The position numbers and the translations under genes are program-made. The notes beneath the pieces were generated by a model, which saw only the letters and a program-made list of their open reading frames with translations, was not told where the DNA came from and searched no databases. Below, in pieces: positions 45,370 to 51,764 of a stretch of DNA of 64,000 nucleotides. How positions within the stretch are numbered: position 1 is the first letter of the stretch; each line of letters opens with the position of its first letter. This DNA comes from Cyanophora paradoxa CCMP329 (taxonomy: Eukaryota > Plantae > Glaucophyta), in the NCBI GenBank assembly GCA_004431415.1, contig QPMI01000062.1:248001-312000 (forward strand). Reading direction: 5' to 3'.

Positions 45370-45880
45370 TCAGGCGCGAAGCGCGGTGTTGCGGCTCGTG
45401 GGAAGTGAGAAGCCAGCGAGTGCCGAGGCCAGGAGGCCGATGTGGTCGAACCTGGTGCGGCCGGAGGCAGACCGTTCTATGCGCACTGTGAGCATGGCGT
45501 ACTGAGGCACTAGATTGCCGATGGCAGCGCGGCGGCCGTCGCGCGAGCAAGAGCGCATCAGAGCCGTCGGCTTCTGTGCGCGCCCGGCGCGGGATTGCCG
45601 GGCGGCGCGCGAGCTCACCTTTCACCTCGCAAGAAAGCGGCATGGTTGAAGAGATCGCAGTCGCCGAGCTCGGATCTGCGGGCGGCAGGTGCGGGGCAGT
45701 CAGAACCATCGGCGCGCACTTGGCCAAGCGGCGCGCACCGGAACGCGGCGTCGCGGGCGCCTTCTTCTTGCACTGCCCGACGTGCTCATGAACATACAAG
45801 TGCGAGCACAGGAGCGCTGCGAGGTTGCACCGCCGCGGCGCGACGCCGCCCAGGTACCGGTACAAGCGCCATGCTGTAGG
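45370..45880 (-). CDS. Possible small spliced hypothetical gene or relic, divergent from the STAND gene
   Basis: One convincing gt...ctgac...cag intron (~45676-45738) and an ag|gtgagc donor; no recognisable protein. Confidence 0.25.
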
Positions 45881-46000: not shown

Positions 46001-49000
46001 ATGGGCTGCTGCCAGTCGAAACTGAATTCGAATGCAAGCGCTCGCAGCGCAGTGCCAACGGCAACGAGAACCGCGAAGCTCGAGGAAGTGACTGTAGTGG
46101 TTTCGGACCGTCCGCCGACCCCAGCGACCCGCCCACCGGACCCTTCCGCGCAGCCTAGACCTGCAGCCACACCTGCGCCTGCATCGACGACCCAGGCGTC
46201 GGCAGCTCGTCAAGATGGGGCACCCCAGCAGCTCACTGTGCACGGCGTGCCGGTAGAATGGCCAGCCGCTGCGGTCCGGGCTCCTTCGACGGCCCCGCGG
46301 CCGGCTGCGGCTCCCTCGGCCGCGCTCCGGGACGGTCTGCTGGCCCAGAAGCGCGTCGTGCGCATCTTCGTCTCCTCGACCTTCCGTGCGCGCGATTGGG
46401 ATCCTTCTAGGCCAGCGCAGGCCGCGGCCGCCCGTTCCTTTCTGACCTGTGGCCGCGCCCGCAGAGGACATGCAGGCGGAGCGGGACGCCATTCGCAGCT
46501 TCGTGAACCCGACGCTGAAGGCGATGTGCGTGGAGCGCGGGCTCTTCTTCCACTGCGTCGACCTCAGGCCCGGCCCGCCTGCGATTCAATCTGGCCTCCC
46601 CCGGACTGAGGCCGCGCGCCGCAGGTGGGGCATCAACGAGGAGGCGTGCCAGGCGGGCGAGGTGACGCTCCTGTGCCTGCGAGAGGTCTTCCGCAGCACG
46701 CACTTCGTCGGCCTGCTCAAGGTGCCGCCCTTCCTGCGCGACGCCCGGGGCCGGGGCCGGGGGGCCCGCCGACGGAGCGCGGCGCGACGCAGGCTCGCTA
46801 CGGGTGGCACCTGCGGCCCGACGCGCCCGCCAGCGACACGGGCAACGGCCTCTTCCGCCTGTGCGCACCATTCCGGGAGCCCGTCCCCTCCGAGGAGCCG
46901 CCAGTGACCGGAGGCGCTGGGCAGGAACCTGGATCGCGCCGCGGAGGAGTTCCCCTGGGTGCGCGAGTGGGAGGACCGCAGCGTGACCGAGATCGGTGCA
47001 TGCGCGAGCGGGCTCCGGGCCGCGGCCGCCCTCTTAAGCGGCCGCGCGCAGAGATCCGCGCGTGTGTGCTCGGCGGCGCGGCGCGGACCGCAGGGGCGGG
47101 GCCCCCAGCCCCGCGCCTCGAGGTGCGGCCCCGCCCACAACGGCCGACTTTTGGTGCCGTTGGCTCACGGTCCTCCCTCAGGCGATGCGCGGGAAGAGCT
47201 TGTTTTACGTGGCCGGGCCGGGCCTGATGCGGGACGCGGTCGCCGCCGGCGGGGCCGGGGAGGGCCCCTACGCCGAGCAGCGCCTGGAGGCGCTGAAGGG
47301 CGAGATCCGCGCTGCCGGCCTGCCCGTCGTTGAGTACCCCGACGCCCAGCGGCTCGCCCTCGCCATGCGCGACGCCCTCCAGGCAGTGCGCGCGTACCCC
47401 GGCGCCGATCGCCCGCGCGCCCCCTGACCACGGCCGCAGAGGCTCGAGCAGGAGTTCCCGCTCCAGAGGGAGCGGCCGTGGCTAGAGGCGGAGCGGGCGC
47501 AGCACGAGGCGTTCGCGGCGTCGCGACAGCGCGTCTTCGTGCGCAACCCGGAGGACATAGACGCGCTGAGCGCCTACGCGGCGGCCTCGGGCCCCGAGGT
47601 CCTCGTCCTCCACGGCGAGGGCGGCTGCGGCAAGAGTGGTGCGCGTGCGGCCATCGGGCGCGTGTGCGTAGTCCCGTTGCTGACGGTGGGCGGCCGGGCA
47701 GCGCTGCTTGCGAACTGGGCACGGGAGTGGGCCGCATCGTACCCCGACGACCTGGTGGTCGTGCACTTCATCGGCGGATCCCAGAGCAGCTCGCTGCTCG
47801 CGTCGGTCGCCCGGTTCGCGTACCCCACCGCGCCTCGTCCTCCACGCGTCCCGCCAATTCCGGGCTGCCTGGCAGACGCATCAGCGAGGAGGTCTGCAGC
47901 CGATGGCCCGGGGCCGAGGACATCGACGTTTGTGGCACGGACGCCGAGGTGGCGGCCCACCTGAGCGCCTTCCTCGCTGCAAACTCCGGCTGGCCTTTCC
48001 GCGCTGTCCTCATCCTAGACGGACTGGACCAGCTGCGGGGTGACCCCGCTGCGCGCAACCTCGCATGGCTCCCGCCCTCCGCCGGCCTCTGCCTCCGCAT
48101 CTTCGTCTCGAGCCTGCGCGGTGCGGCTCCCGCTGCGGCTGAGCCTTGGCGCCCCATCAACGCGGCCCGGTAGGCCCGACGCTGGACGCCGCGATGGCGA
48201 GGGCGCACATCGCCCGCAAGGTCGTGCCCCTCACGGAGCCCCGGCGCCGGAGGCTGGTCGAGAGCGTGCTGAAGGAGCAGGGGCGCGCCCTGTCCGACGA
48301 GCGCCTCGAGCGGATCGTGCACGCCGACGCTTGCCGCAACGCGCTCTTCCTGACCGTCCTCCTCGACGAGCTCTCGAACGTCTCTGTTCACGCAAATCTC
48401 GACTCCGACATTGACGCCTTCCTTGGCTGCGGGGACGAGCCACGGGACCTCTTCCGGCTCGTCCTGCGCCGCCTCGGCTCGCGCCACGGGGCGACCCTCG
48501 TGCGGGACATTGCGTCGGCCATCGCCTGTGCGCGGCACGGGATGGCGGAGGACGAGCTCAGGGCCTTCGTAAGCGTGGATGCGACCGGCGGGCCGCGGGA
48601 GGTCGACTGGAGCCTCTTCTGGCACGACTTCCTGGGGCTCGTCGTCTGCCGTGACGGGCCATACACCTTCTTCCACCGATGCACAGCGGAGGCGGCGGAG
48701 CTCGAGTTCGGCCTTGCGGGCGAGCAGTCAGCGAAGCAGCGGGCGGCCGTCCACGCGCGGCTGGGCGAGTTCTTTGCCTCGCAGCCGGCCTCGCAGCGGC
48801 GCGCGGAGGAGGGCCCGTGGGCGCTGGCACGGGGCGGGTCCGACTGGGGCGAGCATCTGGCGGGGATCCTGTGCGATGCCGACGTCCTTGCGCGCCTGGA
48901 CGGCTACGAGCTGGTGGAGCTCTGGCTCGCGAGCGGGCGGTCCGACGAGGCCGCAGGGCGCTACGCAAAGGCGCTCCGGTTGGGGGGAGAGGAGGCGGAC

Positions 49001-51077
49001 CCTGGCCAGCTGAGCAGTGCTGGCCTCTTGCTGAGGAGGATGGGACGAGCCAGTGAAGGCATCCGGTTCTTGCAGGTGAGGCGGTGCTTTCTTGGCCATT
49101 CAGGTATACTGTGGGAATGCTTAAATTGCCGCGTAGTTAAATTGCCAAGTTCGACCAAAATCAGAATTGCCGTGACGATAGATTGCCGAGACTCTGGATT
49201 TCTTCTATGGCGCCACACAAAAGCAGCCGTTTAGCCCTACCCCCTGAGAATTGCCATGGCTCAAAATTGCCGAATTCGGCCTCTCGGCAATAAACGGCAA
49301 TTTAAAACATCGGCTAAAAAAGCACTCCTACAGTATATGGCCTGCTCGCTCAACTCCCCCGCCCCTCGCAGGAGGCACTAAGGCTGCGCAAGAAGGAGCT
49401 GGGGCTGGAGCATCCGGACGTTGCGTCGACGATGCAGAACCTGGCCATCATGCTGAATGCCCAAGGCGACTACGCGGCGGCGCGGCGCATGTATGAGGTG
49501 TGGCGCACGTCTCCCTGGATCGTTGTGGCCCTGCTCCTTCGAGGCACCCACCTGGCCCGCATCGCGCAGGAGGCACTAATGCTGCGCAAGAAGGCGTTGG
49601 GGCCGGAGCACCCGGACGTTGCGATGACAATGCAGAACCTGGCCGTCGTGCTGAATGCCCAAGGTGACTACGCGGCGGCACGGCCCATGTACGAGGTGTG
49701 GCGCTCGTCTCCCTAGATCGTTGTGGCCGTCCTTCTTCCTCCGTGCTCCCAACACGGCTGCCCCTCACAGGAGGCTCTGCGAGTGCGCAAGAAGGCGTTG
49801 GGGCCGGAGCACCCGGCCGTCGCGTCGACGATGCAGAACCTGGCCGTCGTGCTGAAGGCCCAGGGCGACTACGCGGCAGCGCGGCCCATGTACGAGGTGC
49901 AGCACACATCCCTTTGGATCGTTGTGGCCCTGCTCCTTCGAGGCACCCACCTGGCCCGCATCGCGCAGGAGGCACTGAGGCTGCGCAAGAAGGCGTTGGG
50001 GCCGGAGCACCCAGACGTCGCAATGACAATGCAGAACCTGGCCATCGTGCTGAAGGCCCAAGGCGACTATGAGGCGGCACGGCCCATGTACGAGGTGTGG
50101 CGCTCGTCTCCCTAGATCGTTGCGGCCGTCCTTCTTCCTCCGTGCTCCCAACACGGCTGCCCCTAACAGGAGGCTCTGCGAGTGCGCAAGAAGGCGTTGG
50201 GGCCGGAGCACCCGGACGTTGCGTCGACGATGCAGAACCTGGCCAACGTGCTGAAGGCCCAGGGCGACTACGAGGCGGCGCGGCCCATGTACGAGGTGCA
50301 GCACACACCCCTTTGGATCGTTGTGGCCCTGCTCCTTCGAGGCACCCACCTGGCCCGCATCGTGCAGGAGGCACTAATGCTGCGCAAGAAGGCGCTGGGG
50401 CCAGAGCACCCGGACGTCGCGATGACAATGCAGAACCTGGCCAATGTGCTAACGGACCTGGACGACTACGAGGCAGCGAGGCCCATGTATGAGGTGCGGC
50501 GCGCGTGCCCCTGGATTGATGTGCCCTGCTCCTTTCTCGGAGTCCCCAATCCAGGCTGCCCCTTGCAGGAGGCTCTGCGGGTGCGCAAGAAGGCGCTGGG
50601 GCCAGAGCACCCGGCCGTCGCGTCGACGATGCAGAACCTGGCTTCCCTGCTGGAGGACCAGGGCGACTACGAGGCGGCACGGCCCATGTACGAGGTATGG
50701 CGCGTCCCCCTGGATCGTTGTGGCCATGCTCCTGCCTCCCGAGGTCCCGACCCAGGCCGTCCCTTGCAGGAGGCGCTGCGGATGCGCAAGAAGGCGCTGG
50801 GTCCAGAGCACCCGGACACGGCGTGGTCAATGTATGGCCTCGGGGACCTCCTCTTGAAGATGGGGACGAGTGCGGCGCTCTCTGAGGCCGTACTGCTCTT
50901 CGAGGTGCGCGCACGGTTGTGGCCCTGGGTTCTGCCGGCGCGGCCCGTCTGATGGCTGCCCGCGCCGCCTCCAAATCGCAGGCCGCGCTCCCAGCGCTCG
51001 AGAAGGCCCTGGGGCCTCAGCACGCGAAGACGTCGCAGGTTCGGCGAGCACTGAAAGACGTCAGGAAAAAGTCATAA
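46001..51077 (+). CDS. DUF4062-NACHT/STAND NTPase-TPR protein (NPHP3/TEP1-like, NLR-like), predicted N-acylated
   Basis: MGCCQS start; VRIFVSSTF|EDMQAERD..VDLR|WG (DUF4062); Walker A VLVLHGEGGCGKS; Walker B VLILDGLDQL; 42-aa kinesin-light-chain-type TPRs (LGPEHPDVASTMQNLA); stop TAA at 51075-51077. Confidence 0.9.
49105..49337. mobile_element. MITE-like non-autonomous DNA transposon in an intron
   Basis: TIRs tatactgtgggaatgct / agcactcctacagtata (15/17, TA at both outer ends), inner IR ttaaattgccg/cggcaatttaa, repeated aattgcc motifs; removal restores a typical ~65-nt intron. Confidence 0.8.
49372..50904 (+). repeat. Exon-intron tandem array: seven 126-nt TPR exons plus one 135-nt variant, separated by 72/75-nt introns
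   Basis: Exons 49372-49497, 49570-49695, 49771-49896, 49969-50094, 50170-50295, 50368-50493, 50569-50694, 50770-50904, all cag|GAG...GAG|gt. Confidence 0.93.
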
Positions 51078-51596
51078 CATCACTGACAGAAGAGTTCAAA
51101 ATGGATTCAAATGCATATGGATTCAAATTCAAAATGGATTCAAATTCGCAACAGGATATATGTATTCAAAACAAGCGAGTTCCTGCGCATGCAAGTTCGA
51201 ATTCCGCTCTTTGCTTGAAAATTAAACGGGGCCCGGCCCGCAACCGCGCGCGGTTACTGTTGAGAGGATCGACTACGCCGCCTAGTAGCTTCGAATTATA
51301 GCTTGGTCTAGCTATCACAGTATAGCTTCTAGATCTACGTACAGCAACGCTATCAGGGACCGTCTAGCTATATATAGCTATAGCGCAGGAACACTAGAGC
51401 GCATTCTGTCAGAAAATAAAATTAACTTGTTGGGGAATTCGAAGGACCGTCGGACCCCCTTCCGAGGCCCTGATCATGAGCCTCGGAGCTCCGGAGGCCT
51501 GATCATTAGGGGGGCAGCGCGCTAGGCGACAATTGCAAACTTGAAAATGCATAGATAATTAATATTATTGCGGGACCGGACACTGATCGATATCCC

Positions 51597-51764
51597 GGCA
51601 TCTGCGTGATCCTGTTCACCCGCGACCTGCCGGACGGGAACTACCGCGACCTTGAGAAGAAGGGCCTCAAGCCCAAGGTGGATACGAAGGCGGCGGTCAA
51701 GATCGCGCTGTCGGACTACCGCACCTACATCTTCGCCCTCAACTACGCCGTCTGCTTCGGATGA
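51597..51764 (+). pseudogene. NRT2: Orphan fragment of an NRT2-type high-affinity nitrate transporter
   Basis: GICVILFTRDLPDGNYRDLEKKGLKPKVDTKAAVKIALSDYRTYIFALNYAVCFG*, matching the NRT2 DLPDGN...YRTWIF..Y...G region, with strong GC3 bias inside low-GC non-coding DNA. Confidence 0.78.

Follow-up and report, generated by a model that had tools for sequence, protein, structure and literature searches.

A candidate NLR-like NIR-NACHT-TPR receptor gene with one repeat per exon, member of an expanded family in the glaucophyte Cyanophora paradoxa

We analyzed a 64-kb window of the Cyanophora paradoxa CCMP329 genome (contig QPMI01000062.1; "the window" means this whole stretch of 64,000 nucleotides, and all positions refer to it) with a focus on the gene tig00000241_g20969. 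We predicted an intact gene of 20 exons on the forward strand, encoding 1189 aa with zero internal stops and with 18 GT-AG introns and one GC-AG intron, of 53-79 nt save one of 296 nt. Its product combines a DUF4062 domain, now called NIR, with a NACHT NTPase and an array of tetratricopeptide repeats (TPRs), each encoded by its own exon. The features of the gene are as follows.

46001..51077, +: whole gene, 20 exons, 1189 aa; tig00000241_g20969.t1 (EukProt EP00741 P021725)
46001..46021, +: N-terminal MGCCQSK, predicted acylation motif
46022..46351, +: Pro/Ala-rich linker, tentatively treated as coding; a similar stretch is encoded in paralogs
46352..47448, +: DUF4062/NIR TIR-like domain, aa ~118-336, exons 1-8
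46995..47053, +: putative catalytic Glu242, second Glu of SVTEIE, aligned to TEP1 E1008; codon split by intron 5 (46995 / 47052-47053)
47599..48266, +: NACHT NTPase; Walker A 47614-47637, Walker B 48009-48032
48267..49075, +: helical and winged-helix region with FFHR motif (48668-48682), and lead-in to the first TPR
49105..49337, strand not applicable: insertion in intron 11 resembling a miniature inverted-repeat transposable element (MITE)
49372..50694, +: seven 126-nt phase-0 TPR exons, starting at 49372, 49570, 49771, 49969, 50170, 50368 and 50569
49498..50769, +: seven homologous introns of 72, 75, 72, 75, 72, 75 and 75 nt, types A and B alternating
49570..50367, +: youngest duplication, a pair of 399-nt blocks, each with two exons plus two introns
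50770..51077, +: divergent capping repeat and terminal helix; exons 50770-50904 (135 nt) and 50982-51077 (96 nt)

The largest exon was a 100% match to EukProt P0001 (tig00000241_g20969.t1), and the TPR exons of P0001 agree with our model. The two models differ in that we kept 46110-46265 as coding and removed the 296-nt intron whole, both choices being favored by the paralogs; introns 7 and 9 were placed with P0001 and the paralogs as a guide. The EukProt model wrongly makes an exon from part of the MITE-like element, a splice that we rejected because the paralogs run from FLQ straight into the first repeat. This element lies just before the first repeat exon, has 42-nt terminal inverted repeats, TA ends, internal AATTGCC repeats and a GC content of 0.45, and is present in a single copy in the window; its host intron would be ~65 nt without the insertion. 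It accounts for the trace of transposable elements noted in an earlier annotation made from the letters alone (the sequence-only reading).

Pfam cut-offs were passed by DUF4062 (PF13271, 42.4 bits against 24.7), NACHT (PF05729, 35.1 against 26.7) and TPR_10/TPR_12, and NB-ARC (PF00931) gave zero matches in the gene. The order of these domains is that of effector, NTPase and repeat sensor in the tripartite NLR-like STAND layout. Walker A, Walker B and the winged-helix motif were also intact, in this gene and in most paralogs, and the NLR-like architecture first proposed for the locus was borne out. A solved structural relative of the helical exon was searched for and none was found; the capping repeat and the terminal helix are kept in close paralogs. 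The protein had also been described as membrane-anchored. No transmembrane segment was seen in tig00000241_g20969, and what stands of this description is a predicted lipidation motif: MGCCQSK matches the myristoylation consensus (Gly2, Ser6), followed by two adjacent, presumably palmitoylatable, cysteines. An MG-C/S start was observed in nine of the 28 Cyanophora paralog models, and we predict membrane anchoring via lipidation of this motif. The DUF4062-NACHT-TPR gene of Pelomyxa schiedti (L004, 1001-6531) likewise begins MGC, which suggests acylated NIR receptors in Amoebozoa.

NIR has been described as a TIR-like NADase that acts as an anti-phage effector, including in STAND-TPR Avs proteins, and that is also found in human TEP1 (bioRxiv 10.64898/2026.05.01.722283; 10.64898/2026.09.04.749371). 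The domain is reported in only 9% of Archaeplastida genomes, and Cyanophora is not mentioned in the main text of either preprint. We observed a match to the TEP1 structure 11gz_A with E 8e-17 for the single sequence and E 7.7e-50 for the alignment profile. In the profile alignment, with the position counted along the chain, TEP1 E1008 falls on Glu242; this column was invariant in 113 aligned sequences, and the residue was kept in 25 of the 25 Cyanophora paralogs covering the site. The equivalent of TEP1 R976 was kept as well. The predicted structure of the domain (predicted local distance difference test, pLDDT, 93.5) had its best matches among TIR and nucleoside deoxyribosyltransferase folds (VIA-align, Z 10.9, root-mean-square deviation 3.0, 135 residues), and a clear match was not found with Foldseek. 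The domain, previously noted as effector-like, thus belongs to a family now known as defense NADases, and from sequence and structural model we predict it to be the NADase effector of tig00000241_g20969.

Homolog searches yielded at least 28 Cyanophora gene models on 26 contigs, seven of them assigned by contig-style name only. In a FastTree phylogeny, the 26 models long enough to be placed formed, with four unlabelled sequences, one clade with an SH-like (Shimodaira-Hasegawa-like) support of 100 and a long stem; its sister group was without support and a composition bias was flagged. The best matches outside the clade were mostly prokaryotic or metagenomic and, with the sister group unsupported, we do not claim horizontal transfer from bacteria. 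The closest paralogs were 76-86% identical over the core, with 4 to 11 repeats and a capping repeat common to three of four, and the motifs were conserved across paralogs only 40-60% identical. The repeat index Psim, in our own calculation and with 0.7 as the threshold for NLRs of high internal conservation (HIC), was 0.73-0.87 in five close paralogs. In six paralog models, the protein runs off or has an insert exactly at the exon junction, the stretch in question starting with Val or Ala, as expected from translation through a GT or GC donor; this is indirect evidence for a family-wide intron register. The nearest repeat was found in the same gene for 37% of repeats (14% by chance) and in another gene for 63%, where near-consensus repeats act as hubs, so that these figures are no proof of interlocus exchange. 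In the homologs tested outside Cyanophora, the TPR introns of the intron-rich Pelomyxa control lay at scattered positions, and the 126-nt exon series was not seen in the Mytilus gene. Overall, these results agree with a lineage-specific multigene family of varying repeat number whose exon register is independent of the amoebozoan and mollusc homologs tested, and they contradict the single-copy NPHP3 ortholog named in the sequence-only reading as its refutation.

A non-immune role has nevertheless to be weighed, in which a scaffold or signaling protein like NPHP3 or TTC41, a lipidated STAND-TPR protein, serves flagellar or membrane trafficking with a catalytically silent NIR domain and repeats that expand but have no recognition role. 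The domain order is NPHP3-like, three NPHP3 Pfam models gave weak matches, NPHP3, NWD1 and NWD2 show no NADase activity in vitro, and the MGC start is shared with Pelomyxa. However, 28 paralogs in a lineage-specific clade are difficult to reconcile with such a protein, and the catalytic Glu and the Walker motifs are kept across them. Moreover, the non-TPR NPHP3 models remained below cut-off (PF25022, 20.1 against 33; PF24884, 21.9 against 27.9; PF24883, 21.7 against 24.8), the TPR model alone passing, and animal NPHP3 was not named among the matches listed in two homolog searches. We consider this explanation unlikely, although it deserves to be kept in mind.

The array consists of seven exons of exactly 126 nt, each encoding a 42-aa TPR and flanked by phase-0 introns of 72 or 75 nt, with a mean amino-acid identity of 84% between repeats and a Psim of 0.89. 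The rule of one TPR per phase-0 exon, as first read from the letters, was thus confirmed; the exon boundary, though, falls after TPR position 25, within helix B, so that each exon is a permuted repeat and not one canonical TPR. The array introns are homologous and of two alternating types (introns 3 and 5, and likewise introns 2 and 4, are 97% identical). With Tandem Repeats Finder, periods of 201 and 399 were detected; at the center of the array, two 399-nt blocks, which are exon and intron dimers, differ at 20 sites (95% identical). Since the introns were co-duplicated with the exons in this dimer, the amplified unit was exon plus intron, copied as a pair in the latest round. The first array intron (49498-49569) is an A/B mosaic, its first 22 columns differing from type B by 2 changes and its 3' part from type A by 0-1, and the exons show an odd/even pattern in their 5' half that is absent from the 3' half. 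Incompatible sites were significantly clustered by a test like the pairwise homoplasy index (PHI-like p 0.0001 for exons and introns, 0.012 for exons alone), whereas their total share was not significant alone, being matched by 12% of the no-recombination simulations. The intron mosaic and the exon-only clustering together place points of crossover or conversion in exons as well as introns. Each of the seven array introns has a length divisible by 3, and an in-frame stop is absent from five, so that retention would add 24-25 residues to helix B with the frame kept; these lengths are not independent evidence, as all trace to one ancestral intron.

The sequence-only reading had seen in this layout a device for exon skipping and intron-mediated shuffling. 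Splice-based shuffling of the repeat exons would be compatible with the symmetry of every one of them, which keeps the frame on skipping, with the intron lengths just described and with at least one crossover inside an intron, and such splice variants are known in brown-algal ROCO genes. However, tandem duplication of an intron-bearing repeat gives symmetric exons automatically, so that symmetry needs no special explanation and is not evidence of selection for shuffling. Crossovers lie within exons too, the introns measure only 72-75 nt, and outside bilaterian animals exons are seldom skipped. In addition, a six-frame scan of the window found no spare, inactivated or inverted repeat exons, unlike Ectocarpus, where inactivated repeat exons in introns are a hallmark. 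These results favor unequal crossing-over or conversion at the DNA level and do not support the splicing mechanism, which we judge rather improbable.

Ligand contacts in TPRs have been assigned to positions 2, 5, 6, 9, 12 and 13 (PMC1261162). At these groove positions, chosen a priori, the nonsynonymous difference between repeats of the gene (pN) was 0.28, compared with 0.06 at the remaining positions (permutation p 0.002); the synonymous difference (pS) was 0.25. The resulting pN/pS was 1.12 (0.36-2.09) in the groove, compared with 0.22 in the scaffold, and a value of 1.69 (1.06-2.72) was obtained for a post-hoc set of four sites only. These ratios indicate constraint on the scaffold and, in the groove, either relaxation or positive selection. 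Among 58 repeats from seven genes, entropy was highest at positions 2, 9 and 12 (3.2-3.3 bits, 12-14 residues each). These data place the variation on the ligand-binding face. The variable sites had been described as clustered after the NLA motif, and the residues listed there were exact, but exon codons 4, 5, 16, 19 and 35 vary too. Since groove positions are variable in TPRs generally, this pattern marks the array as a ligand-binding sensor but is not in itself a sign of immunity. Neutral repeat instability, affecting a gene family that is redundant or in decay within a repeat-rich genome and leaving an array devoid of adaptive meaning, would fit a groove ratio that falls short of showing positive selection, the MITE within the gene and the several paralog models that are truncated or have a degenerate Walker A, but with an intact reading frame, a constrained scaffold, changes concentrated on the groove and motifs conserved across distant paralogs we find it rather unlikely.

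The window has a GC content of 70% and short introns; the C. paradoxa genome paper gives 9.2 introns per gene with a mean of 86 bp, a mean gene spacing of 770 bp and a probably haploid PacBio assembly. The intergenic flanks of the gene exceed this spacing, with 1.7 kb upstream (GC 0.59) and 1.4 kb downstream (GC 0.53). The lower-GC pocket described earlier is thus limited to these flanks, as the GC content of the NIR-NACHT part is 0.72, compared with 0.70 across the window. A Cid1-type poly(A) polymerase gene is the upstream neighbor, and a dephospho-CoA kinase gene lies beyond a coiled-coil gene. Directly after the stop codon we observed an AT-rich tandem repeat of 16-17 nt (51095-51147) and, in the downstream flank, a short open reading frame (51606-51764) with no Pfam match. 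Two inverted matches of 28-31 nt (~93%) between 45733-45774 and 1174-1343 are possibly a shared promoter-like or repeat element. Elsewhere in the window, the reading-frame pairs 9772-10293/12641-13432 and 19495-19980/22960-23610 have stretches of translation in common, which suggests that F-box-like and other genes underwent two local segmental duplications.

Several known systems resemble this gene in part. The NB-ARC-TPR genes of the brown alga Ectocarpus (PMC3341825) form a multigene family of proposed receptors that combine a STAND NTPase with 42-aa TPRs, one per 126-nt exon. In contrast, the Cyanophora gene has a NACHT domain, a NIR effector, an acylation motif and homologous introns of 72-75 nt. 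The Ectocarpus search motif runs from GKY to Q and the Cyanophora exon from EAL to YE, which may point to another register. HIC NLRs of fungi and other organisms (Podospora HNWD, TPR NLRs; PMC13449251) share near-identical repeats, here with a Psim well above the threshold, hypervariable sites on the surface, gains and losses of repeats ascribed to unequal crossing-over, and an association with transposons; they differ in that each Cyanophora repeat carries a co-copied intron and the effector is NIR. TEP1, NWD1, NWD2, TTC41, NPHP3 and the bacterial NIR-Avs2, Swarozyc, Vulcan and Vesta, treated in the two NIR preprints, have the N-terminal NIR domain with catalytic Glu, the STAND NTPase and a repeat sensor. 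Cyanophora stands apart from them by its lineage-specific expansion to at least 28 genes within Archaeplastida, where the domain is rare, its hypervariable TPR sensor and a Gln at the TEP1 R908 position. Finally, prokaryotic and amoebozoan DUF4062-NACHT-TPR proteins have the identical three-domain order and 30-37% identity over the core, but the Cyanophora genes group apart in a clade with a long stem, and the Pelomyxa introns do not follow the repeats. An animal relative with an extra lectin-like domain was found in Mytilus trossulus (FBA-DUF4062-NACHT-TPR; L006, 1001-35052). The prokaryotic loci L001 (1-11081) and L002 (1-15459) hold two or three tandem STAND genes, most with DUF4062 and with WD40, TPR or unassigned sensors; L002 also contains an AAA_5 ATPase gene and a Band_7 gene and is a candidate unlisted defense cluster.

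With modest confidence, we favor a membrane-tethered NLR-like sensor that acts through NAD+ depletion and owes its diversity to DNA recombination. Lipidation would hold the receptor at the membrane, where the TPR solenoid would hold NACHT in a closed state as long as the concave groove of the solenoid is empty. Binding of a ligand there, most probably a foreign protein, would be followed by nucleotide exchange, by which NACHT would oligomerise and the NIR domains would cluster; these domains would hydrolyse NAD+ and so arrest or kill the infected cell. Novel recognition specificities would come from unequal crossing-over or conversion between in-register repeats and from gene birth and death, and the single exon per repeat would be incidental, resulting from amplification of a repeat in which one intron was already present. 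The immune role is inferred by analogy. High internal conservation is enriched in NLR-like proteins, and recombination among repeats, as in HIC NLRs, was detected here in both the PHI-like test and the intron mosaic. At two of three prokaryotic homolog loci, several DUF4062-STAND genes with differing WD40 or TPR sensors stand side by side, a clustering that would be expected for conflict systems.

Several points weigh against this sensor. A catalytic Glu is no proof of activity, as human NWD1, NWD2 and NPHP3 showed no NADase activity (both NIR preprints), and the activity-supporting TEP1 R908 is replaced by Gln in tig00000241_g20969 (Arg or Lys in some paralogs). A groove pN/pS of about 1.1 fits relaxed constraint, and positions 2, 5, 9, 12 and 13 vary across TPRs in general. 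PADLOC models gave no match to the core; NF040586 (FxSxx-COOH TPR) scored 239 against a cut-off of 300, the score coming from the repeats. A bolder extension of the recombining sensor would be a genome-wide combinatorial immune repertoire of this unicellular archaeplastid, in which dozens of acylated NIR-NACHT receptors exchange intron-bearing TPR units between loci or cells, by recombination or splicing, and so combine heritable or clonal variation in recognition with an NAD-depleting death switch; we regard this as a long shot.

In the searchable literature we found no description of such receptors in glaucophytes, of Cyanophora NACHT-TPR proteins or of myristoylated protist NLRs. Every component has a known counterpart, and it is the combination and the lineage that appear undescribed. 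Cyanophora would be a second lineage, besides brown algae, with sensor repeats arranged one per exon, and its co-duplicated introns record a recombination history that is hidden in the intron-less fungal arrays. In the two NIR preprints, NADase activity was shown in bacterial defense and in human TEP1 and was not found for the other human NIR-NACHT proteins; a recently diversifying family of 28 members in a culturable alga offers a direct test of eukaryotic NIR-NACHT proteins as immune receptors. The family also bears on how glaucophytes recognise non-self, and it suggests that a diversifying repertoire for innate immunity may be maintained in a unicellular relative of plants.

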